From NCBI GenBank assembly GCA_964247055.1, contig OZ176051.1:8680001-8744000 (forward strand): a stretch of 64,000 nt of DNA, read 5' to 3'. The notes under the pieces are model-generated. The model did no database searches, was not told the origin of the DNA, and saw nothing but the letters and a program-made list of their open reading frames with translations. A program made the position numbers and the translations under genes. Of this stretch, positions 3,601 to 60,411 are shown one piece after another; position 1 is the stretch's first letter, and every line of letters starts with the position of its first letter. The stretch is from Paragordius varius. Lineage: Eukaryota; Animalia; Nematomorpha.

Positions 3601-5762
3601 CTTACAAAAAGTAATATGTTCCATGTTTGTTCCTGTCACGAGACAAATGAAAATCATCAAATTCAATTTCATTTTGCAAATTTTAATTTAAGAAAATGTT
3701 TAAATAAAAATAACTAAAGTCAATGAATTTTTGTATGAAAATAGCAAACGTAACCGTTAAGCTTGTTATACAAAATTTAATTACAATAAATAAATTTACA
3801 GTCTGAATGCCATTCACTTTATATTTTTTAAGCTGCATTCATGCTATAATTAACGAGATAGTTCAAAAAAATCATTTTCAAAATAATCATGTAAATATAC
3901 TAGGTATAAGATTTTAAATTTGAATATAATGATTTAATAGAGGCGTGTTTTTGGAGTTCAAACATATTCTAAGCATACCGTTGTTTAAATAACAACCAAT
4001 AACTTATTTTAATCTTTAAACTCCTGTCTCAAAAATTTTCCTACCGAGTTATTTTTAAGGCTTTGCGTCGTGCTAAAAATTAGCTAAAATGCTAAAATTT
4101 TGTCGCTAGAAAATAATAATATCTTGGATTTACTAGATCAGGGGTGTCCAACATACCGCCCGCGAAGTTTCTGATTCATAATTTTCGATAATTACTCATA
4201 AAATCTCATTGTTTCCTAAACAATTTTTCCAAATAAGTTTATTTAATTGGTAAGAGCAAAAAATTGTTATATTATGGTTAAATTTTACAGTCTAAGGAAA
4301 TCCGATATATGAATGCCCATATATATTTTATGCTACCCGCCAGTAGTTATAATTTCGGCCACTATTTGGGTTGCCCTGGTTGTATTTAGTTAATAAAAAT
4401 TATTATTAAAATGTATATAACTTTCGATAGTTTAAGTTATATTGAAAGATTAAATATGCTGTAAATAAAAAAATTTAAATAGCCGGTAAATATTTTTTTC
4501 CAAAAAAGTATTTTCAAAAAATAAAAGTTTTTTATAACGCAAGAATTAACAAAATAATTTTGATTCGTTAGGCCAATTTTTTTACATTTCACAAACCATT
4601 TTCTAATAACTAATGTATAATAAGTAATTTATTAAACAATGTATAGTTTTAAATATTATTACGCAATATTTTAATCCTTCTTTGGGTCCGTTTAATTTGG
4701 ATTTAACAAAATTGCTACAAAAAATTCAAACAATAGCCAGTTGAGAAAACTTTCCGTCGGTTTCTCTTTTTTAACTTGTTTAAAATAATCGTTAAATTCA
4801 TTATATAATTTGAATGCTTTAGAGTAGTTTAGGCAAAAAACTCTCATAATTATTTTCAATAATAAAGCTGTGGGCTAAAAAATACTCAATATGTATACGC
4901 ATTTAAAAAAAATAAAATAAATTAAAAAAACGAAAAATGTTTCAGTTAACGGATCCATGATTATTAGCTAGACTTCTAAATATGATTCTAATTATATTAG
5001 AGTTCAAATTACATAAAAAACTATATTTAGCCCAATTTTTTCTAGTACATGTGTTCTTGTTTTTAAAAGTTTTTTCGATCCTTTAATTCCAACTGGTCCA
5101 GTGCAACTTTAAAAATATATTCATAATAACTAAAGCTAATGGTCATAATAATTATATACCATTTTAATATATATTTAAAATAACCTATAATTTAATTAGT
5201 TTGGTTTTGAGGAAATACAAGTTAAACTGTTGACACCATTTTTGTTTCAAATTTTGGAAAATTATCATGTAGCTAAGGTTAAGTTTCTAATATTTTTTTC
5301 CATTTTAGAAAAATTAGGACGGAAATAATTATTTAAGCTCCAATCTATTTAATGCTATTAGCTCATAAAGCCGGGTGTCCAAAACAAATGGTTCGGTAAG
5401 CATATTTAGATCGAAAAATTAAACGGGTATTATTCGGAAAACTAATAAATATATTTTATATAAAAATATGAAGGCTAAAAACTACTATTTTTTACGTTTT
5501 TAAACCATAGGTCTTTAAATCGCGCTCCCACAAAATATTTCTACAGCCCTATATATAATTATAAATAATACGGAATAAATCACTTTAAAAAATTTTTCTT
5601 GGTTGTTATATAGGTGTAAGTTATATATATTTATTTAAATTGGTTTAGTGCCATTGTCCTAAGTATATTTAGACATGATTTTTATTTAACAGATTTTTTG
5701 GGGTAATCTCCCAGCCCAGGGTCATTTAAAATATAAGCACTTTAAAAAATATTTTTAGCATG

Positions 5763-11465: not shown

Positions 11466-14429
11466 TTAAGTCTGATACTATAAATCATAAATATATTCTT
11501 TCAAAAAGTATGGAAATATTTGTATAAACGCAACATTTATACTGTAGACAATAAATTTTATTTGAGTTTTTTATTAATTGACATGATTAGAGCAAATATA
11601 CAATTCAAGTTTTAGGACCTTTTTTAACACATGGATTTTGGAACTTTTCTCCATTCTTAGATCTATCACATAAAATAAAAATCTATTTCTTAAAAGCTAG
11701 TTTGTATTCACTTTCTAAATTTGTAATATCTTATAAAATTAAAATTTTTTGGCCATTTTAAGAAAAATTTAAATTTTATTTTTAAACTATTGTTTTTTTG
11801 TAAAGTTATTACTCACGATAGTGCACAAAATCGGGTATATCTGATCGTGAAATGAATTCAATTATCGTGGTTCTTTAGGTTTTCGAGCTTAAGAAAAGAT
11901 TTTTAAATTTTTCAATTGCCCCAAATCCAAAGAATTTTTTTTGATGCTAAAGACGATAAACATTAAATTTAGTTTAAATTTTCGAAGCGGGCTCCAATGA
12001 TCTTAGCTTTTTGTACCAGACCAAAGGCCAGTACAAGTGTCGAGATTGATATGGTATCAAAACATTTTAAAATTTTTTATAAAGCAACCAATCAAAAAAT
12101 TTGTTAGTCCCTAATTAAATTAAATTATTTTTAATTCTTATGGAATATTATTCAGTAACATTGAATTGTAAAAATGTTTTTATATTGTTTCAATGCCTCA
12201 AATACCATATATAAAATCATATTTTGTATTAAAAAGCAAAGCTAACCTATTATTTTAAAGATAATTTACATAATAGCGATTATGCGCTTCCAACATATTT
12301 TAAAATTTTGTGCTTTTTGGGCTCATTTTACCGAAAATGGAGGCATTCGAGGCCAACACCCAAACTGTCAATTATTTTAAATAGTTTTCCTTAGATACAT
12401 ACATACTTATAAATAAATATTGGTTTAAGGTTTTGTCTTTTACATTGAAAATCGATATAATGAGCGCTAATTTTTTTTCGATATGGAGCAATCATTACAG
12501 AAGGAAATTGTTTCTCAAATGATTCAAGACCGTATTCCAATTCACCAGAATTTATATATATCCGAGGCGTATGCATTTCTGGAGCCCAGTGCATGAATCC
12601 GTGATGGTGCCCCCATGAACCCCTTGCATTTTAAAAAAAGTTCAAACCGTGGACATGACCACTCATAAATGGGTGATTTTTTTTATTTATTATTCAAAAT
12701 AAACTTTTAAATACCTATTTATATAAAAAAATTTAAAATCCGACGCCTCTTCAACTATGGCGCCCGGTTCATTAGCTCCCATTTCTCTCCCCTAGCTAGC
12801 CCTCTAATAATAAGGTATTTCATAAACTGAATACATATATCGCGATTAAAATAAATTTTGCCTTCAGAACCGAAATCTAACATAAAGAAACGGCTGAATT
12901 AATAAGTTAATTAGCTTGATAATGTTATTGTTCAAATACTATAATAAAATTGTTTTACATTTCAAAACATTTTGGGGTATTTTAAGCTATTGGAACTTGA
13001 ACCTAAAAATATTAAATTAGGCCTAATTTGAAAGTATGTAGCCTTTTAGAATTATATCGAAATATTTTATATAAAAATATAAAATTGTGAAAAAAATGCT
13101 CAACTCAGATATTATCTCCACTATTTTTTCTTTATATTTTTATATGTGTATATGGTTAAATATAAATAATTAATTTTAAAAGCTTTCAGGTTGCAAACTG
13201 ATATTTATTGATTTTATCAGCTGCTAGTTCAATCGTGTTTGGAGCTGTTTCAATATCTCTAAAAGTTACAAAAATGTAAAAATATAAGCTTTTTAATTAA
13301 TACAGGCCAACAATGTTTGATAATTAAATTATAAATAAAATAACTTTCAAAACAGTAGTTTCTTTACAAGATTGAGCTCTGGAATAAAAAATACCCTATG
13401 TCATCACGAACAAAAAAGTGTTAAGGTCATGAACTGGAAACAAGCGATTAGCAATATTTAATGGCGCCAAAATGTATATATTTGTGTCAGGAAAAAAAGG
13501 TGGATCAAAATATTTTATTACACCCCTCTCAACATGATATCGAATTTCTCTATATATTAAAGGAGTGATTATTTAACTTATTTTCAAAATATATATTAAA
13601 TCATAAATTTAAATCAATTATAAGAATCTAATTACTCTTTGAAATTCCATATTGATCGTGTACAAAGACTTGGATGTTAGGTTATGCAAGCACAAATTCA
13701 AATTTCCAATTATTGGAGTATCCGATATTTTGGCAATAAACTAAAATAAAGTATATTATATTTGAAAAATATTAATAACATTTTCACCTCTTTGTTTTTG
13801 ATAAGAATTGTTAAGCATATACACATGTTATCTATTTTTTTAGGCCAAATTAATTACCAGAAAGGAGGCGCAACTCTAGGGGGGGGGAGGGGGCAAAAAA
13901 TTTGGAATTCAATTAAAAATAAGCCAGAAACAAGTTATAGGATTTCAGATGCGAATTATCAAGATTTACCGATGTAGTGAAAATATTTCAAAAATGTAGA
14001 TATAAGGATATGATGGATTGATTAAGATTTTTATAACATCATAATATATTTCATTTTTATCTGGATTTTAATAAGAGGGGGTGCAAGAACCTTTATTTCC
14101 AAGGTGTGGCCTAAACAAAAAAAGGTTGGGAACTGGGCTAAGCTAATATAATAATTGCATCAATTCATTAAATGGGACACACTAGTATAGACGTCGGCCA
14201 TTTTTTAAAATATGTTTAAGTGTAATACTTATTAAGATTTTCACATTGTACTTCATAAAAAATGATTTTTATATAAAAAGGATTCCTTTTTTAAGAGTAT
14301 TTATAAATAAAACTTAGAAGACAGACATTCAAGTGCTAATATTTTTGCATATATTGGGCAATCATTGGTTTTAAAGGTCATATGTAGAGTATAAGTCGAC
14401 CCTCCTCTACCTCCCCGTCTTCCTTAAAA

Positions 14430-15240
14430 TATAAGTAGTGGTTTAAATGTCTCACTAATGCTGGTTATGATTAATAGCGTCACTATTAGAGATACTCTGG
14501 GGTTTTTTTTATTATGTTTGAATTTTCTCTGTTGCCTATCATGATGATAATTTGAGCCTGAGGTTCAGGCTTAATAAAAATAACAGCAGCGGCATTCTTT
14601 ATTAAGCTGCCTATTTATATCTTTCATTCATGGTTACCTAAAGCGCATGTAGAAGCTTCTACATGCGGGTCTATACTGCTAGCAGGTAGACTCATCTCTT
14701 CTTTTATCATAGTCTTACTAAGTGATGGAAAAATAATAATTGCTTTTTCAAGAGTAACACACATGACATTAATAGTATTAGCTTTTTTTGGGATTTCTAC
14801 CTCTGGGTTTTACTCCTTATTGTACGTTAGTTTATCTCACGGATTTACAAGTTCTTGTATATTTTTTTTAATCTACAACAAATTGCTAACGCGTAACCTT
14901 ATATTAGTTAAGTCATCTAATAAGTATGTAACCTCGTTACTGTTTTATTATGTATATTTCATCATTTTAATGTTTAATGCAGGGTGCCCACCTTCTTTAA
15001 ATGTGGCAGGTGAAATTATAACTTTTTGGGCTGTGTTAAATGATTCAAAGTTGTTTTTTAATTGTTGGATCTATATGCTCTTTATTAATAGGCTTACTTT
15101 TATTTATTAACACTATAAATATTACAAATCACTCCTTAGGTTCTCAGTATTTCTCACAATCTTTCATATCAACAAACTTTATTCTATTTGTTTTTCTTAT
15201 AGCTCATTTACTTCCTTGATTATTTCTAAACTGAATTTAA
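14430..15240 (+). pseudogene. nad4: NUMT: mitochondrial nad4 fragment (5' boundary approximate)
   Basis: In the invertebrate mitochondrial code it reads FFIMFEFSLLP..WAWGS, AFFIKLPIYIFHSWLPKAHVEA, DGKMMIAFSSVTHM, SHGFTSS, NAGCPPSLNVAGE, AHLLPWLFLNWI-TAA(15238-40). There are frameshifts in T-runs (~14503-14510, ~15054-15059) and two large in-frame gaps. It is embedded in nuclear DNA with spliceosomal genes and transposons. Confidence 0.93.
14644..14667. repeat. Perfect 24-bp palindrome CGCATGTAGAAGCTTCTACATGCG inside the nad4 PKAHVEA motif
   Basis: The sequence is its own reverse complement, with no loop. It encodes AHVEASTC. Confidence 0.95.
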
Positions 15241-15258
15241 CCCAATTTATCCTCCTAG

Positions 15259-15317
15259 GTGAAGTGAGCGTAAATTGTGATCTTACTAAATCTGATTATT
15301 GTATTCAGAACTTCACA
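15259..15317 (+). tRNA. trnH: Mitochondrial tRNA-His(GTG), D-armless, NUMT copy
   Basis: Acceptor stem GTGAAGT/ACTTCAC (7 bp). A 4-nt linker GAGC replaces the D arm. Anticodon arm GTAAA-TTGTGAT-CTTAC with GTG at 15277-79. T arm TCTGA-TTATTGTAT-TCAGA. It lies between nad4 and nad5, the ancestral position of trnH. Confidence 0.75.
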
Positions 15318-15319
15318 AT

Positions 15320-15451
15320 CCTAATTTGAATAAAGTCGGATAACTGATATATGACGGGTATAAGCATCAAACATATTACTGTGAGCGCACAGTAATATGT
15401 TTGATGCTTATACCCGTCATATATCAGTTATCCGACTTTATTCAAATTAGG
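15320..15451. repeat. Perfect inverted repeat, 64-bp arms, 4-nt loop, over the nad5 5' end
   Basis: 15320-15383 is the exact reverse complement of 15388-15451; the loop is AGCG. Confidence 0.97.
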
Positions 15452-15959
15452 GTTTTCTCCTTTATAATAACTAACTTAAAGTTTGTTGATATGTATATTA
15501 ACTATGACCCTTTAAGATTTTCTTTTATATTAAATTTAATAGTAGTTTTTTTAATAATTATTCTTTACAGATTTTTCTACATAGAAAAATCTGACTTTAA
15601 ACTAGGGTTTATAGGTGTAACTAGTATTTTCTTAATTTCTATAGTACTTATAGTTCTGTCTTCTTCCCTGCCAGTTATTCTACTCGCTTGAGACTCACTG
15701 TTCCTCTTTCTTATTAGTTTTGTTTTACAATAATTACTATAGAGAAAATAAAAGACTGGTCACATTAGCTATAAATCGTTTAGGTGACGCTTGCCTTATC
15801 ATCTCTTTTCCTTTAATTTTTTCAAAATATGACGCTAATATAAATTTAATAAATTCATTAATATCTAATTTTACATCTGTGGACTCCTTAATTCTAATAT
15901 TACTAATCACAGCTTCTTTCATAAAAGCAGCTCAACTACCATGAAGTGCTTGGCTGCTA

Positions 15960-16093
15960 GCAGCCATGGCTGCTCCAACACCTATTTCTTCACTTGTTCA
16001 CTCTAGCACTTTGGTGTGTGCAGGGGTCATTCTTTTCACCAAAGTGCTAGAGTGAACAAGTGAAGAAATAGGTGTTGGAGCAGCCATGGCTGC
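15960..16093. repeat. Perfect coding inverted repeat in nad5, 57-bp arms, 20-nt loop
   Basis: 15960-16016 is the exact reverse complement of 16037-16093. The left arm encodes [19 protein letters not shown]; the right arm encodes [19 protein letters not shown] in the same frame. Confidence 0.97.
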
Positions 16094-16397
16094 CTTAGTT
16101 TACATTAGTTTTATAATATCATCTATCTCGTCTACAAAAAATTTTGATTTTAAAAAAATCATTGCTCTAAGTACTATAAACCAAATATCTTTCTTATTAA
16201 TTATTACAATAAATGTAAACCAATATTTTATAGTGTTTCATATAATTAGTCATGCTGTTTTTAAAAGAAATACTTTTATAATAGCCGGTTGTTTATTTCA
16301 TAACTCAAAAGGATCACAAGAGTACCGTTTTAATTCATCTAATAGAATTAGTAGTTATTCAGTATTCCTACAGAGAGCTTTTATATCTCTATACTCT

Positions 16398-16635
16398 CTA
16401 TCAAGACTGCCGTGATCAATAGGTTTTTACTCAAAGGAGCAAACTTTGTCTTCATCTTTATGAAAGGAGACTGTTCCTTTCATCTCATTGATGCTATTCT
16501 TTTTCATTTTTTACTCTTTTTTCTGTTTATATCTTATTATAGCATCAATGAGATGAAAGGAACAGTCTCCTTTCATAAAGATGAAGACAAAGTTTGCTCC
16601 TTTGAGTAAAAACTTGATCACGGCAGTCTTGATAG
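16398..16635. repeat. Coding inverted repeat in nad5: 75-bp perfect arms plus a 22-bp outer stem after a 3-nt bulge
   Basis: 16423-16497 pairs with 16539-16613 (41-nt loop). 16398-16419 pairs with 16614-16635, with TAG (16420-22) bulged out. Confidence 0.97.
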
Positions 16636-17312
16636 GAGTTTTTAGAATTTCAGGAGCAAACTTTGTCTTCATCTTAATAAGCCCTTCTCTCCCCTCGTCT
16701 TCTCTCTCCTTTCACTGTCTTTAATTTTAAAACCTATTATCACCGGGAAGCATATCTACTTGAGACACTTTAAACCGTTTTCAAGGATAGTAAATTATAA
16801 TAATATAGCCATATAATACAGGGATTAACATATTTTTGGTCTGATGACAGTTCCGATTCCGCATATTTTTACCTCGGGTTTTAAAATTTTTTTGGCTTGA
16901 TTTCGCTCTTTATCTACTGCTTTTGTATAAATGAAGTTAGGATTGTTTTTGACAGATTGCTAATTAGCCGCAAAACATAAAAGGTCACAGAATTTATAAT
17001 ATGCTACTCATTTTGAAACAAAATTATAAATCGTAAACAATATATAAATGGGATTAGATTTTAAAAACTTAATATTAGACCTATTACCGCATTCAAAGAA
17101 GTTATAATTTTTTAAATAGTTAGTAATTTAAAATGATATGATTTGGTTATATAGTGTCAATTTTTTATTTTTATAGAGTCATGGTTTAATGAAGGAATCT
17201 GATTTAAAAATTTAAATAAGTCAAAAATTTACTTCAAAAGCTCGGGTTTGCTTGCGAATTTTATTTATAAAATCAAATGTAAAAAATATGACAAGATGGA
17301 AAACTTAAGCTT

Positions 17313-20300
17313 TTGCACGACGTAATTTATGTGTATAGCCTTCGCTTAGGTTGTTGGAAAAAGGAGTTTGATATAATAATTTGTGTTCACTGCAAAACTC
17401 TATGAGGCGGTCTCCTCTATCGTTTTTGTTTCCCAATCCTTTCCCACCAGTGATTTGATGTGTATTATCGTTACCTACTATCGCGTTAAAGTCGCCCAAA
17501 ACAAATATCATGTCTTTTTTAGGAACTTTCTCAATAGATCCTCGTAAAATTGTTCGGAGTCCTCTTCGTTGTTAGAGTTGGTAGGGGCATAGATTTGGAA
17601 TATCGTTATTGGTTGTGGAGACGAGTTTAGTCGAAGTGATATTATGCGATCGCTGTGTGGGTGGTGAATTTCGGATGCATTGGCGATTGATTTGGTTACT
17701 AATAGGGCCACACCGTTTCGTTTAAGAGTATCATGACCTGAGTATAATAGGATGGGATTTTCATATTCTATGTTGCCGTTTAACGGAATGTGGGATTCTG
17801 CTATTCCTAATATACTTATGTTGAGTTTCACCATTTCTTTTATGATAACTTCGATTTTGTTGGTAATGCCGCGAGAGTTCCACGTGCCAATGCGTATAGG
17901 CACATCACAGGAATTAGTTTTTTTTCGGAACAGTCATTGTCTGAATTTAGTTAATTTAGATGTAGAGAATAGGGAGGATGTGTTAACAATCGATAGGTTT
18001 GTGATGAAGGATATGAGGAAAAAATGAGTTGTATTTTGAATAATAAATGATATTTTGTGGACAATTGAATTTTTAGTTTGTGTTTTCTTGGCTTGCAAGA
18101 AGCATAGAAACCAAATTGACTTTATTCTCGGTATGCAAAAATATAAATCTTTCTTTATGAACGTAAAAACTTACCCTGGTTCTGACTGCTATTCTGATCA
18201 TAATCTCCTTGTAGCTAAACTAAAAATTAAAACAGTTCTCTCACGCAAACCAAAATTTCAGCATAAACCTAAATTAGATTTCTCTGCGATCTCCCCCGAG
18301 TTTCCTTTGTTACTTGAAAACAGATTTAAAACACTCGAAATAGACGATGACGCTGAAAATCTGTGGAATACAATACAAAATATCACTAGCACTACAGCCA
18401 GAGAATGCATCCCTATCCAAAAATCCCATCTTAACAAAATTAAGCTATCACAAAAAAGTTTAGATTTGGCGGACAAACGGCGCCAAGCTAAACGCAATAA
18501 TAATATGGCAGAGTACAAATCACTTAACGCAGAGTTCCAAAAAAACGCTCGGGAAGACAAAAACGATCACTACAACAGCTGTGCTTAAAACTAGAAAATG
18601 CTGCTAAACATAACAACAACTACTTTGCTGAAGTAGATCACATTGCTCCACATAGGTCTAAAATCTAAGGCCCAATGAGAAAGGAAGACGGAGATATCAT
18701 CACAGACAAGAAAACACTGGTGGAACGATGGAAACAATATGTATTAAAACTATACGGCTCCAGTCCATCGAACGCCGATAAAAACAGTAAGATCTATCAA
18801 CATGACCCACCGATCATCAAAGATGAAGTTGAATGGGCGCTTAACCATTCCCCAAACAACAAATCTGAGGGGTACAACGATATTTCAACCGAACTCATTC
18901 GTTTTATCCCAATCCATATCCTAACTGACTTATTCCAAAAGATATTTGCTCACGCCTTATTCCCCCAAGACTGGTGCAAATCAATACTCATCCCCATCTT
19001 GAAAAAAGGCGATCCTAAATCATTTAACAACTATAGAACTATAGCGCTAATCAATCAAGCATCAAAAGTTTTCCTCAAAATAATTCACAGGCGTATCCAA
19101 GGCATAATTGAAGCCGAACATTTTAATACTCAAGCGGGATTCAGATCCAATCGCGGATGCAGGGACATGATCAGCAATATACGTTGGATATTCGAAAAAC
19201 AAATTGAATTTCAGAAAGAAACCCACATCTGCTTCATTGATTTTACAAAAGCCTTCGACAGCGTGAAACACGACACGCTGTGGAAGGCACTATCTCAGAT
19301 GGGTGTTTCAGATCACATTTTGAACATCATAAAATCCCTTTATTCCAATTCTTCACTAAACATAAAAACCTCACATGGCATAAGTAATTGGGTACAAATG
19401 AACAACGGTCTAAGACAAGGTTGTGTCCTCTCACCCACTCTCTTTAACGTCTGCATAGAAAGTGTATTACGGAACATAGATAAAACTAATGGTATAAGCA
19501 TTACCGGCAATATTATATCATCACTCCATTATGCTGATGACACCATATTGCTGTCAAACTCAGTGGACAACCTGAAAAAACTCCTAACAGAATTCTCAAA
19601 CGAATGCCAAAAATTTGGACTGACGATCAATTTCAAAAAAACTAAAATCGTGACTATAAACGCTCATAACCATTATAACAACTTATCTTTTCACAACCAA
19701 CAATAGAAGTAGTGTCCCAATACACTTACCTAGGCAGTCTTATAAATACAACAAACAACAGCACCCCAGATATTAAAAGAAGAATAGAAATTGCAAAGAC
19801 AAAAATGATAAAATATAATAAACTATGGTCATCACACGACATCAAACTTAAAACAAAAATCCGTTTAGTTAAAGCCCTAATATTTACTAGCATGCTATAT
19901 GCATCAGAAAGCTGGACAATAAAAAAGTCAGAAGAAAAATACATTAACGCCTTCGAAATCGGGTGCTGGCGGAAGGCACTTCAAATTACTTGGAAAGATA
20001 AAGTAAAAAACACTGTAATCCTTGAAAAAATAAAACCCGAGATACACTTGATTGGCATGTGCCTCAAAATGAAATTATCATACTTTGGTCACATTACCAG
20101 AGCTAATGACTTGGAATTCCAACTAATGACAGGCAAGGTCGAAGGATCCAGGAAACGTGGACGCTGCAAGATGCGCTGGATTAAAAACCTAACCAAAGAA
20201 ACCAATCTCTCTCTACAACAGTTAACATCACTCACTCACAATCGAATAAACTGGAGAAAATACACCTTCGAAAAAGCAATAAATCGACAACGATCTTTGC

Positions 20301-20315
20301 TACAATAATAATAAT
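17313..20315 (+). mobile_element. RTE-clade non-LTR retrotransposon (APE endonuclease + reverse transcriptase), disabled, with inverted 5' segment
   Basis: Minus segment 17313-~18093 holds the 5'UTR and endonuclease N-half (IGTWNSRG, LGIAESH, NGVALL, QIYAPT, LGDFNA, SNSFFQQPKRRLYT). Plus segment from 18094: KHRNQIDFI, SDHNLLV, YRTIAL, QAGFR, FIDFTKAFDSV, GLRQGCVLSPTLFN, YADD, YTYLGS, LYASESW, YFGHITR, GKVEGSRKRGR, then a (TAA)3 tail. Several frameshifts and stops. Confidence 0.95.
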
Positions 20316-35600: not shown

Positions 35601-38600
35601 AACAACAACACTTCAAATACATATAAGAATTATATTTTATTTATACACAATGAATACATTATTCAGACATAAAATGGTTCCAATAGTATTCATCAATCAT
35701 ATGGACATTATTGGAACTATAGTTTTTTTCTATTTGTTTGAGCGTTTGATGGAACCGTTCTCCATTCTGGTCTGTAGCCCTCCGCCGGGGGAATTCATCA
35801 AAATGGTTATCCACAAGATGTACTTTTATGGACATATTAGCACCTAAAAATAAATAAATAACATTAAATGTTAAAGATAAGTTTTAAAAAATTATATATT
35901 TACCTAGGACTTTAAAGGAATCTGGTACTTCTGCTCCTAGAGAGACATAATCTATAGATTTAAAATCAAAAATTCTCTGTTGAAAGTTTTAAATGCATTA
36001 AATGCTCTTTTTTCAACAGGATTCATTATGTTGTTAAAGGCCTCCGATTTAAATAATATTTCTATTTGAGGTCCAGTTAAATATCCTGTCGACAATTTGA
36101 TTGGATTGATTTTAAATATATTTAAACAAAATAAATAGGCTGGTCCTTCTCTATTCATATTAATTATAAAAGTTCAAGCTAGAACCAATTTTATATGCAA
36201 GGGAGGAATAATCAGGTTATCCATATGCCGCGGTTTGAAAGGCGGGTACCCTGCGTACGCCTGTCTTTTTTGCCTCTTAAATCTAAAGATAAAGAAAACC
36301 ATTATAATCCACACCATTTATACCATCCTAGAACGGATGATGTCATAGGTATGTTTAAATTTAAAATACAAGGTACTTACAGCCTGGACAGAATCCCATT
36401 GATTCATATGGATCCTGATTATTCCTCCCCTGCATATAAAATTGGGTCTAGCCCGAACTTTTATAATTAATATGAATAAGGAAGGACCAGCCTATTTATT
36501 TTATTTAAATATATTTAAAATCAATCCAATCAAATTGTCGGCAGGATATTTAACTGGACCTCAAATAGAAATATTATTTAAATCGAAGGCCTTTAACAAC
36601 ATAATGAATCCTGTTGAAAAAAGAGCATTTAATGCATTAGAAAACTTTCAGCAGAATTTTTGGAAATTTTAAACCTATAGATTATGTCTCTCTAGGAGCA
36701 GAAGTAGCAGATTCCTTTAAAGTCCTTGGTAAATATTTAATTTTTTAAAACTTATCTTTAACATTTAATGTTATTTATTTATTTTTAGGTGCTAATATGT
36801 CCATAAAACTACATCTTGTGGATAACCATTTTGATAAATTCCCCCGGCGGAGGGCTACAGACCAAAATGGAGAACGGTTCCATCAAACGCTCAAACAAAT
36901 AGAAAAAAACTATAGTTCCAATAATATCCATATGATTGATGAATACTATTGGAACCATTTTATGTCTGAATAATGTATTCATTGTGTATAAATAAAATAA
37001 AATTCTTATATGTATTTGAAGTGTTGTTGTTGGGTTAGACTATTTTCAGATTTGAAGCTGTCGTATTGAAGTGCGATCGAGCGCATCATTAATGTTTAAG
37101 TTGCAAATCATCATATCTTCATTTATCGTTTTTGACCAATCTTTAAAGGGTCGGCCCCTTTTATTTTTTGTTGAAGCGGTGTAGTTAAGCATGGATTGTA
37201 GGGGTGTTCCTGTGGACGCCGGTGGATATGGCCTGCATATCCTAAGCGGTTTATCTTTAGAATTTGTTCGATGTTTGGAATATAAGGTAAGGGTCAAATG
37301 TATTATTATAATTATATAGTATAGGATTATGAGCAAATAGGATTGTGTTTAATATTTGACATTCGGAAAATTGTAATGTTTTACAGTTTGTTGCCGTCAT
37401 TGGCCCACACTCTGAGGCGTATGTCCACACCGGTCTTATAACTGTTGAGTAGAGTTGTCCTTTGATTATTTATAATATGTTTGAGTGCATGGTAACTTTT
37501 CCATGTTTGTGTGATTCTATCTTTGATAGCCCCAGTTACGCCATCGTTGGCAGTAATGATGTGACCTAGATATTTGAATTGAACAACTGTTTCATAATCA
37601 GAATTATTGTGTATCGAATGGTTGGGAGTGTTTAAAGAGATGTTGCAGGAGCAATTTTTGCAAACGATGATTGTTTTTGACAATATCATGGTAAGACCGG
37701 AACATTTTTATAAAATTTTGTAGAAACCTATTTATATATTTATTCTTAAATGTAAAAAAGCTGAAAATTCTATTGAATAAAAATCAAATCCATTTATTAT
37801 CAGTTTTTCAATATATATAATCGTAATAATTGCTGTTTTGGACTTTTGTTTGATTTACAATTTGAGCAATTGAGTTTCTGAAAGTAGATTATTTAAAAAT
37901 GTCAGAATAATTTTGCAAGGATAATTCCATTACGTGAAACTCAATCTGGCATTAATATTATTCTTTACAATAGAATTTTCCTTAATAAGCTAAATATATT
38001 GTAAAGCAGGTAACTATTTAATTAGCAAATAAGGCTATTTATATTTCCGATGCTGCCTTCAGCATATCAAAAGGTCTTTAATTAAATTTTTGTCTAGAGA
38101 ATAAATAGTATATAAACATTTATCCAAAGTAAAGTAATGGAAATTTCAATTTTGGAATTTTGCTGGTTTTTTCTGTATTCGCATTTGAAAATTGCGGCTT
38201 TATGTTGTTATGAAACAATCAGAAGCATGTGAGGAAAATAAAATAAAAATAACGAAAATATTCCAAAAAATACAAATTTTTTGAGGGATTAAAAAGATAC
38301 ATAGCCTTTATTAGACATACCAACTCTTTGTTATGTTTAATATAAGTCATAAACTTAAATAATAATAACAATATGGAGTTTTTACAAATATGTCATAAAA
38401 TTTACGAATTTCTATTTTTGTGGAATTAAAAAATTTATTGATACTTTAAATTTTTTGTATTTTTCTTAAGAATATATTAGGTTTTATATAATGTATAAAA
38501 GTTTTATCGTGTTTGCTCAATAAGTTTTAAAAATATGGACAAAAATCTATTTATAGACAAAAATAAAAAAATGGAAGATTTCCATTTTGGGGCGCATTTT

Positions 38601-59059: not shown

Positions 59060-59937
59060 TTTCTTTGAGCTAAAGATAGAAAAAACATTATTTTCTGACC
59101 GCTGAAAGAGTGATTATATTTTTTACAAGTACAACTAAATTTCTCCACATAATCAGCTTTAGCCATTATAAGGAAATCGTTAAAGGTTACTAAAATGAGA
59201 ATGCTTATATTAATATGCAATTTAACAAGGAATCACAATGGAATATATGTATTAAAGGAAGTACTTAAATAAAACCGATAATGCAAAAGATGAATTAATA
59301 TTAGATGAAAGGTCACATACAAAAAGAGATGGTAACTTTTCGGTAAAAAGATTGATAAATAGGGCTCCATATCGGAATAGTTTATAAATGACTGCTCATT
59401 AATGTAATCACTATTATCGAAGCAGGGGCGTACCGAGGGGGGGGGGGGGGGGGCAAGGGGTGCATCATGCCCCGGGCGCCGCTATTTAGGGGCGCCTAAA
59501 TGATTTTTTAAAATTAAATTTTAATTATGCAAAAATAATAAGAACTTTCAAATGAGATTTTTCAGCAATATAGGTAACCAGAAAATATTATACATGAAAG
59601 ATATTTTTTCTCTTAGTTGCCTTTTTCTTTCCAAGTGAAAAAATCTTTATATAATTAATATTTTATTAAATAAATTGCATTATAATTCTGTTAAAATAGT
59701 GTTATAAAATTCGCCTAGATTTACAATTATTTTTTAAATTATTAATGTTCGCTATTATCATAAGATCACTTCAATATATGCAACAAAAACATTATTTTTA
59801 TATATAATTAGCGTAAATCTCGTGCTTCTACGCAGCCCGAGAAAGTCCTTCGGATTTGTGGGGGGAGGGGCAATTTGGAAAAAGGGATAATAAAATGATC
59901 CACATATGTGAATTATTTCGAAACATTATTTAATATA

Positions 59938-60329
59938 CCATTTACAGTTCAAATTCACCCTTGAACAATTCAAATTCACCCTCAAACAATTCAAATTCAC
60001 CCTTGAACAATTCAAATTCACCCTCGAACAATTCAAATTCACCCTCAAATAAATAACATGTTTTTTAAGATTAAAAATTACCTATATTTTAATATATTTT
60101 TAAAAAATAAAATTTTGTTTTAAATTAAAATAATACTGAAAAAAATAATTAATTATGCCATAAAGATATATTTTATATTAATAATGAGTTATATTAATTC
60201 GAAAACACATAATTTATTTTTAGGGTGAATTTGAATTGTTCGAGGGTGAATTTGAATTGTTCAAGGGTGAATTTGAATTGTTTAAGGGTGAATTTGAATT
60301 GTTCACGGGTGAATTTGAACTGTAAATGG
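59938..60329. mobile_element. TA(TA)-flanked foldback MITE whose arms each hold five 21-bp repeats
   Basis: CCATTTACAGTTC...GAACTGTAAATGG termini. 5x (T)TGAACAATTCAAATTCACCC on the left and 5 reverse-complement copies on the right. TATA on both flanks. Confidence 0.9.
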
Positions 60330-60411
60330 TATAGCTATGATCTCATAGGAATTTCAAAACGCTGCATTCATACTAATATATTGTTTACTTGAGCGAAAAA
60401 TAGATTCAAAA

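Follow-up and report, generated by a model that had tools for sequence, protein, structure and literature searches.

The window, i.e. the 64-kb stretch of DNA analysed here (64,000 nt, positions 8,680,001 to 8,744,000 of contig OZ176051.1, assembled under the name Paragordius varius), contains an inserted segment of mitochondrial DNA (mtDNA). Translated with the invertebrate mitochondrial code, this segment comprises the 3'-terminal two-thirds of nad4, followed by trnH and the greater part of nad5, and it carries four inverted repeats (Table 1). An initial annotation made from the sequence had interpreted it as nuclear mitochondrial DNA (NUMT) of a horsehair worm, in which the coding palindromes of the mitochondrial genes are preserved.

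Both the nad4 and the nad5 pieces matched the Pfam family PF00361. Compared to an ordinary nad4, two blocks of codons are missing from the nad4 copy, one of about 58 codons downstream of WGSGLMKMTAA and one of about 42 downstream of GSMLLA; these gaps may reflect the loss of mitochondrial hairpin regions during or after the insertion. At 14497, 14599 and 14602, contigs of one of the runs described below (X4) were observed to depart from the window sequence. On its 3' side, nad5 is truncated by the right boundary of the insert, so that about 80-140 terminal codons are absent. Between the two genes, trnH was recognised by its 7-bp acceptor stem (GTGAAGT/ACTTCAC), the anticodon loop TTGTGAT and the T stem (TCTGA/TCAGA); it was called neither by ARAGORN (bacterial and mitochondrial modes) nor by Rfam.

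Table 1. Features of the insert and of its nuclear surroundings (positions within the window).
Feature	Position	Strand	Basis or remark
Inserted mitochondrial segment (NUMT), 2360 nt, colinear nad4-trnH-nad5	14438-16797	+	junction contigs
Left junction TAAGTA, common to nuclear flank and mitochondrial sequence	14432-14437		suggested microhomology
nad4 pseudogene, without 5' part	14438-15243	+	PF00361, E 1e-15; true-frame stop 15241-15243
Perfect 24-bp palindrome, no loop	14644-14667	+	inside nad4, reads AHVEASTCG
trnH, 58 nt, without D arm	15259-15316	+	anticodon GTG 15277-15279, found by eye
Hairpin, perfect 64-nt arms, 4-nt loop	15320-15383 / 15388-15451; whole 15317-15454	+	probably inside the 5' end of nad5
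nad5 pseudogene	15344-16797	+	5 nt (GGCCT) missing after 15700, 1 nt after 16701
Hairpin, perfect 57-nt arms, 20-nt loop	15960-16016 / 16037-16093	+	spans the conserved AAMAAPTP motif of nad5
Hairpin, perfect 75-nt inner arms, 41-nt loop	16423-16497 / 16539-16613; whole 16398-16635	+	nad5
Perfect 22-nt outer arms of the 75-nt hairpin	16398-16419 / 16614-16635	+	beyond a 3-nt (one-codon) bulge, 16420-16422
Third copy (26/27) of a 27-nt arm segment	16652-16678	+	other copies 16435-16461 and 16575-16601
Reverse transcriptase of a non-LTR (long terminal repeat) retrotransposon (long interspersed nuclear element, LINE), 1.9 kb downstream	18675-19706	+	PF00078, E 2e-38

Inverted repeats in the mitochondrial genes

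The four inverted repeats reported initially, i.e. the 24-bp palindrome and the perfect arms of 64, 57 and 75 bp, were all found where they had been described. The 64-nt arms extend to 67 nt with a single mismatch at 15319/15452, and two unpaired bases adjoin the 57-nt arms (15958-59/16094-95). Folded as single-stranded DNA, the repeats gave -10.5, -73.8, -74.5 and -114.9 kcal/mol in the order of their positions, with z-scores from -5.4 to -26 and with none of the shuffled sequences equalling the native folds. Inverted repeats of at least 30 nt with 100% complementarity were found within the window solely in the mitochondrial copy, the other nuclear ones being 71-97% complementary. Among the latter, the inverted repeats at 35987-36643 and 59934-60333 comprise 230-nt arms at 95% and 116-nt arms at 97%, respectively, with spacers of 170-200 nt, the second one being made of a tandem unit of about 21 nt. 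Rfam matches to microRNAs at the hairpins were all below the threshold, and any perfect hairpin would give such matches.

The third copy of the 27-nt arm segment is able to pair with the right arm, so that a competing hairpin could form. In nad5, the segment occurs in three readings: as EQTLSSSL, as MKMKTKFAP in antisense, and as GANFVFIL when the frame is shifted. Overlapping repeats of this pattern were reported for hairworms (PMC6649704).

Translation confirmed that one nad5 arm encodes the conserved 19-residue motif and that the other arm is read in the same frame, as had been claimed. In both nad5 hairpins at 15960-16093 and 16398-16635 as well as in the nad4 palindrome, the two arms are in frame with conserved residues. 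For the hairpin at 15317-15454, the only coding evidence is the nad5 frame itself, which is open from 15344 across both 64-nt arms. The bases opposite the Ser codon TCT in the nad4 palindrome are the A that ends Val GTA and the GA that begins the conserved Glu GAA. Since a Pro codon (CCN) at this point would break the pairing unless the conserved Glu was changed, the palindrome would explain the occurrence of VEASTC instead of VEAP; as a matter of sequence logic, this proposal of the initial annotation holds. The codon positions pair third-with-third in the 24-bp and 57-nt repeats, second-with-second in the 64-nt repeat, and first-with-first and second-with-third in the 75+22-nt repeat. These phases agree with the published rule, according to which short repeats pair third-with-third and arms of more than 65 nt second-with-third (PMC6649704).

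Hairworm origin of the mitochondrial segment

A 119-residue piece of nad5 was compared to 1.84 billion protein representatives. The top two matches were Gordionus alpestris (50% identity, E 7e-21) and Gordius sp. VVA-2019 (48%, E 2e-19), followed by the next match at 2e-12. Both species are among those of the 2019 palindrome paper (PMC6649704), which also confirms the earlier statement that coding palindromes are published for nematomorph mitogenomes. In hairworm mitogenomes, too, nad4, trnH and nad5 are reported to follow one another in this order on one strand. When the nad4 and nad5 pieces were used in word searches, only distant matches of 33-43% identity were obtained.

A mirror test written for this analysis determines whether reverse-complementary DNA could code for two segments of one protein. 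Both nad5 hairpins of the window, serving as controls, were recovered, and the same AAMAAPTP...GVGAAM mirror proved possible in the nad5 of G. alpestris and Gordius sp. with arms of 47 and 60 nt. Nothing was found in one non-hairworm nad5 (P0013, from the 15-kb contig L001, used as control only), and shuffled proteins reached at most 27 nt. Contig L001 (ENA ERZ27264707 k141_619461, 15,077 nt) is a complete-looking non-hairworm animal mitogenome recovered by metagenome assembly, with a nad5 that shares 38% identity with the window nad5 and lacks the mirror signature. The nad5 mirror was also sought by pattern in metagenome contigs, without a match. Two nad5 repeats were described as common to all four species studied (PMC6649704), and the site of the AAMAAPTP hairpin is evidently one of them. 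Judged by the best nad5 matches, the gene order and the mirror signature in both proteins, the source organism is a nematomorph, in line with the horsehair-worm host assumed initially.

Nuclear location and empty site

For the examination of the junctions, Logan contigs from four runs were placed on positions 13400-17900 of the window; among these, X3 belongs to another study with another organism label, and X4 was deposited under the same species label. The insert shows a content of guanine and cytosine of 31% compared to 25-27% in the flanks. Contigs of X3 at 14358-14556 and 16687-16858, which are short contigs and not long reads, span the left and the right junction with 0 differences and with more than 31 nt on each side.

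Besides the filled form, an empty form of the site was observed. One empty-site joint leads from 14437 to 16805 with an additional TAATAA and was found in X1 (depth 196) and X4, and a second joint leads from 14436 to 16798 with an additional T and was found in X4. In X4, the two empty forms, with depths of 49 and 51, sum up to the depth of the flank (about 100), so that the worm of X4 may be without the insert on both chromosomes. X1 showed the filled form at a depth of about 225-231 alongside the empty form, with a flank depth of about 290-360, all contig depths being rough values. The insertion is therefore polymorphic, i.e. some chromosomes are without the insert. The empty joints are taken as the pre-insertion site, a clean later deletion being the remaining formal alternative.

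At the left end, the fit of other copies and of mtDNA contigs begins at 14432-14436, as seen from loose ends in X1 and X4; in the empty form, the flank is retained up to 14437. Taken together, this suggests that the TAAGTA at the junction represents a microhomology. Neither a target-site duplication nor terminal inverted repeats were found at the insert. Both ends of the insert apparently lie at or near mitochondrial hairpins, which could be chance (probability about 0.1).

The flank is ordinary repeat-rich nuclear DNA. A high-copy repeat at 17326-20308 showed a very high contig depth in all runs (in X1, 20-30 times that of single-copy DNA). On the strand opposite to the LINE reverse transcriptase, it has a weak endonuclease match at 17508-17903.

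Comparison with mitochondrial DNA

Contigs of X4 with a depth of about 4900-5000, compared to about 100 for the flank, fit the insert at 94-96% identity, with 31 differences in 539 nt and 15 differences in 362 nt. A variant in X1 with a depth of about 75 comprises all listed differences of these high-depth contigs. Both are taken to be true mtDNA. Compared to the window copy, the mtDNA has 2 nt fewer at 14503 (14503-14505 in the copy) and 9, 8, 5 (GGCCT) and 1 nt more after 14857, 15047, 15700 and 16701, respectively. In all four cases in which the difference shifts the frame, the mtDNA version restores a continuous nad4 or nad5 frame. With the 5 nt GGCCT, for example, the translation reads LLAWGLTHCSSFLLV, in agreement with the WDGLGL motif region of nad5. 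Since these differences restore the frames in the mtDNA, and since the copy has nuclear depth and nuclear flanks, the window copy is a pseudogene and a NUMT. All the features behind the original NUMT claim, i.e. nuclear flanks, nuclear depth, broken frames and an empty form, were thus found, and neither a chimera with true mtDNA nor a best match outside the nematomorphs was observed.

In the frames of the working genes, 20 of the 27 listed coding differences between mtDNA and copy are synonymous, and the remainder are mostly conservative. A dead copy would show about one quarter of synonymous changes; therefore, most of the divergence of about 5% arose in functional mitochondria. Based on a crude mixture calculation on the listed sites, a subset biased towards well-supported ones, the copy's own branch would be short, with an estimate of roughly 0.5-1.8%.

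Further relatives of the segment were observed in contigs of nuclear depth from X1, X3 and X4, which showed opposite-strand joints at 14997/15516 and 15346/15970 as well as a 217-nt skip from 14599 to 14817, and in X1, which contains a copy of 15408-15792 with 8% divergence. These observations suggest that one or more additional rearranged NUMTs derived from this mitochondrial region exist at other sites in the genome; within the 64-kb window, no second copy was found. A variant 'B' of X1 was considered as a NUMT of intermediate age and rejected, its data being sparse and partly contradictory: it is apparently without the 8-nt piece, yet its differences from the copy are mostly synonymous.

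Origin of the nuclear copy

Altogether, it is highly probable that positions 14438-16797 represent a young NUMT of the worm's own mtDNA, which carried the coding palindromes along and whose stems are not maintained by the nucleus. In this case, a linear piece of mtDNA beginning within nad4, crossing trnH and ending within nad5 would have been joined into a double-strand break in the repeat-rich nuclear DNA by end joining, possibly with use of the 6-nt microhomology at the left end. The palindromes, which are natural to hairworm mitochondrial genes, would have been carried passively into the nucleus. The insertion would be recent, with chromosomes without the insert still persisting. The copy has since lost its function, with four frameshifting indels, the 9-nt loss and the two larger losses in nad4, and would have gained few substitutions.

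Several observations weigh against this explanation. The depths in X1 give an untidy sum, with about 228 for the filled and 196 for the empty form compared to about 300 for the flank. In the left nuclear flank, a C-rich polypyrimidine run at 14399-14422 shares 20 of 23 bases with a run in nad5 (16682-16703); an equal score was reached by 2 of 951 random pieces, and such runs are otherwise rare in the window. The listed differences represent 40 of about 294, and this subset favours sites seen in several runs. Some of the contig variants may belong to other loci. Furthermore, considering how few substitutions the copy has, its number of length changes is high, with five small indels and two larger losses.

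State of the hairpins and alternative explanations

The mtDNA contigs end at 15346 (X4, 15317+29), at 16066 and at 16427 (X4, 16398+29), which is exactly 30 nt into the arms. Since k=31 graphs break in this way at inverted repeats, the same hairpins would be present at the same three places in today's mtDNA. The functional mtDNA may thus carry the same palindromes, as judged from the positions of contig ends and not from arm sequences. The positions imply that the first arm of the mtDNA is perfect over 67 nt instead of 64 nt (start 15317), that the second arm is 2 nt longer (end 16095), and that the third arm is perfect over at least 31 nt from 16398 and accordingly lacks the 3-nt bulge after 22 nt. 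The favoured explanation for the three arm imperfections of the window copy is plain decay, i.e. hits taken by the nuclear copy.

Conversely, the nuclear copy could be a fossil of an earlier state of the palindromes, the mitochondrial arms having been grown and perfected since then. In this case, the first hairpin would have gained 3 nt (64 to 67 nt) and the second 2 nt (57 to 59 nt), and the bulge of the third would have been removed by a joint change of both arms. This possibility is worth considering and is the less likely one. If it were true, hairworm NUMTs, including the further relatives of nuclear depth, would form a dated series directly showing the concerted evolution of mitochondrial arms on a short timescale.

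The arms account for 460 of the 2360 bases (20% of the length) and show 0 mismatches in 230 paired positions. Since the copy's own branch is short, the near-perfect stems would need no special upkeep; they would have been perfect on arrival, with little time since. A different explanation would be that fold-back in the course of replication or repair, with correction of mismatches, keeps the arms identical within an otherwise decaying nuclear copy, in the manner of the gene conversion between the arms of Y-chromosome palindromes. The absence of mismatches would fit this explanation, as would the finding that the five small indels and the two larger losses are all located outside the arms. Moreover, about 8 arm substitutions would be expected if 35% of the differences (about 1.8%) had occurred on the copy's own branch. 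However, the 20 synonymous differences out of 27 indicate a short own branch, and at 0.5% just about 2 arm substitutions would be expected. The probability that all five small indels miss the arms is about 0.34. In addition, the mismatch at 15319/15452, the unpaired bases at 15958-59/16094-95 and the 3-nt bulge are found exactly where the mtDNA contig ends imply perfect arms, and the imperfect complementarity of the other nuclear inverted repeats in the window also argues against such upkeep, which is accordingly considered improbable. The initial annotation had emphasised perfect stems despite nearby frameshifts. While the perfect arms were confirmed, they are less remarkable than assumed, given the probability with which the indels miss the arms, the youth of the copy and the three small imperfections.

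Even less probable is a transposon as carrier, i.e. an element resembling a miniature inverted-repeat transposable element with terminal inverted repeats, which captured mtDNA. The region is rich in repeats, and an inverted match of 15 nt with one gap links GGTTTAAATGTCTCA at 14440-14455 to 16762-16777. However, 3 nt and 20 nt separate this match from the two ends, 3 of 1000 random pieces score as well, and the match was chosen post hoc; it lies within chance. Both of its sides read as mitochondrial coding sequence in the nad4 and nad5 frames, mitochondrial homology extends to within a few bases of both ends, and a target-site duplication is missing. An assembly chimera, in which mitochondrial reads were misjoined into a nuclear scaffold, is conceivable since mtDNA is abundant in sequencing libraries and palindromes trouble assemblers (PMC6649704), but it is hardly credible considering the error-free junction contigs from another study, the nuclear depth, the matching empty-site form and a copy that is about 5% and four frameshifts away from the mtDNA at 5000x.

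Relation to known systems

The closest known system is that of the nematomorph coding palindromes (Mikhailov et al. 2019, PMC6649704; Parachordodes/Gordionus 2023, PMC10380579), which likewise comprise perfect repeats of tens of bases with short loops in nad genes and with both arms in frame. The AAMAAPTP hairpin is common to both at the protein level, and the overlapping or competing repeats, the pairing phases and the order nad4-trnH-nad5 are alike. In contrast to these palindromes, the window copy is nuclear, frameshifted and truncated, and its palindromes are no longer coding. Moreover, the source species is about 50% identical in the nad5 part to the two published species found. As regards the arms, identical arms within nuclear DNA are also known from large palindromes that undergo gene conversion between their arms (Rozen et al. 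2003, as cited in PMC6649704). Those palindromes are kilobases in size, compared to 12-97 nt for the arms in the window, whose identity can be explained by youth.

The insert also resembles other NUMTs that arise by end joining, some of which are polymorphic. It shares with them the colinear mtDNA, the nuclear flanks, the lack of a target-site duplication, a possible microhomology, the pseudogene character and the presence and absence alleles. It differs from them in carrying near-perfect palindromes of 138-238 bp. Long near-perfect palindromes are usually unstable in nuclear DNA, and the finding shows that palindromes of this size can persist there for some time. Hairworm NUMTs are not mentioned in the literature searched.

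Taken alone, the insert is a single NUMT whose main features are accounted for by known biology. The copy joins two known kinds, i.e. the NUMT and the hairworm coding palindrome, and does not show a new mechanism. Judged from the contig ends, the borders of three hairpins appear unmoved across about 5% of mtDNA divergence, and since the insertion is present on some chromosomes and absent from others, the alleles can be compared. Being free of mitochondrial selection and repair, the nuclear copy represents a natural control for the maintenance of perfect palindromes in essential genes of hairworm mitochondria, showing what becomes of them once the mitochondrial machinery is absent, and it records a past state of their hairpins.

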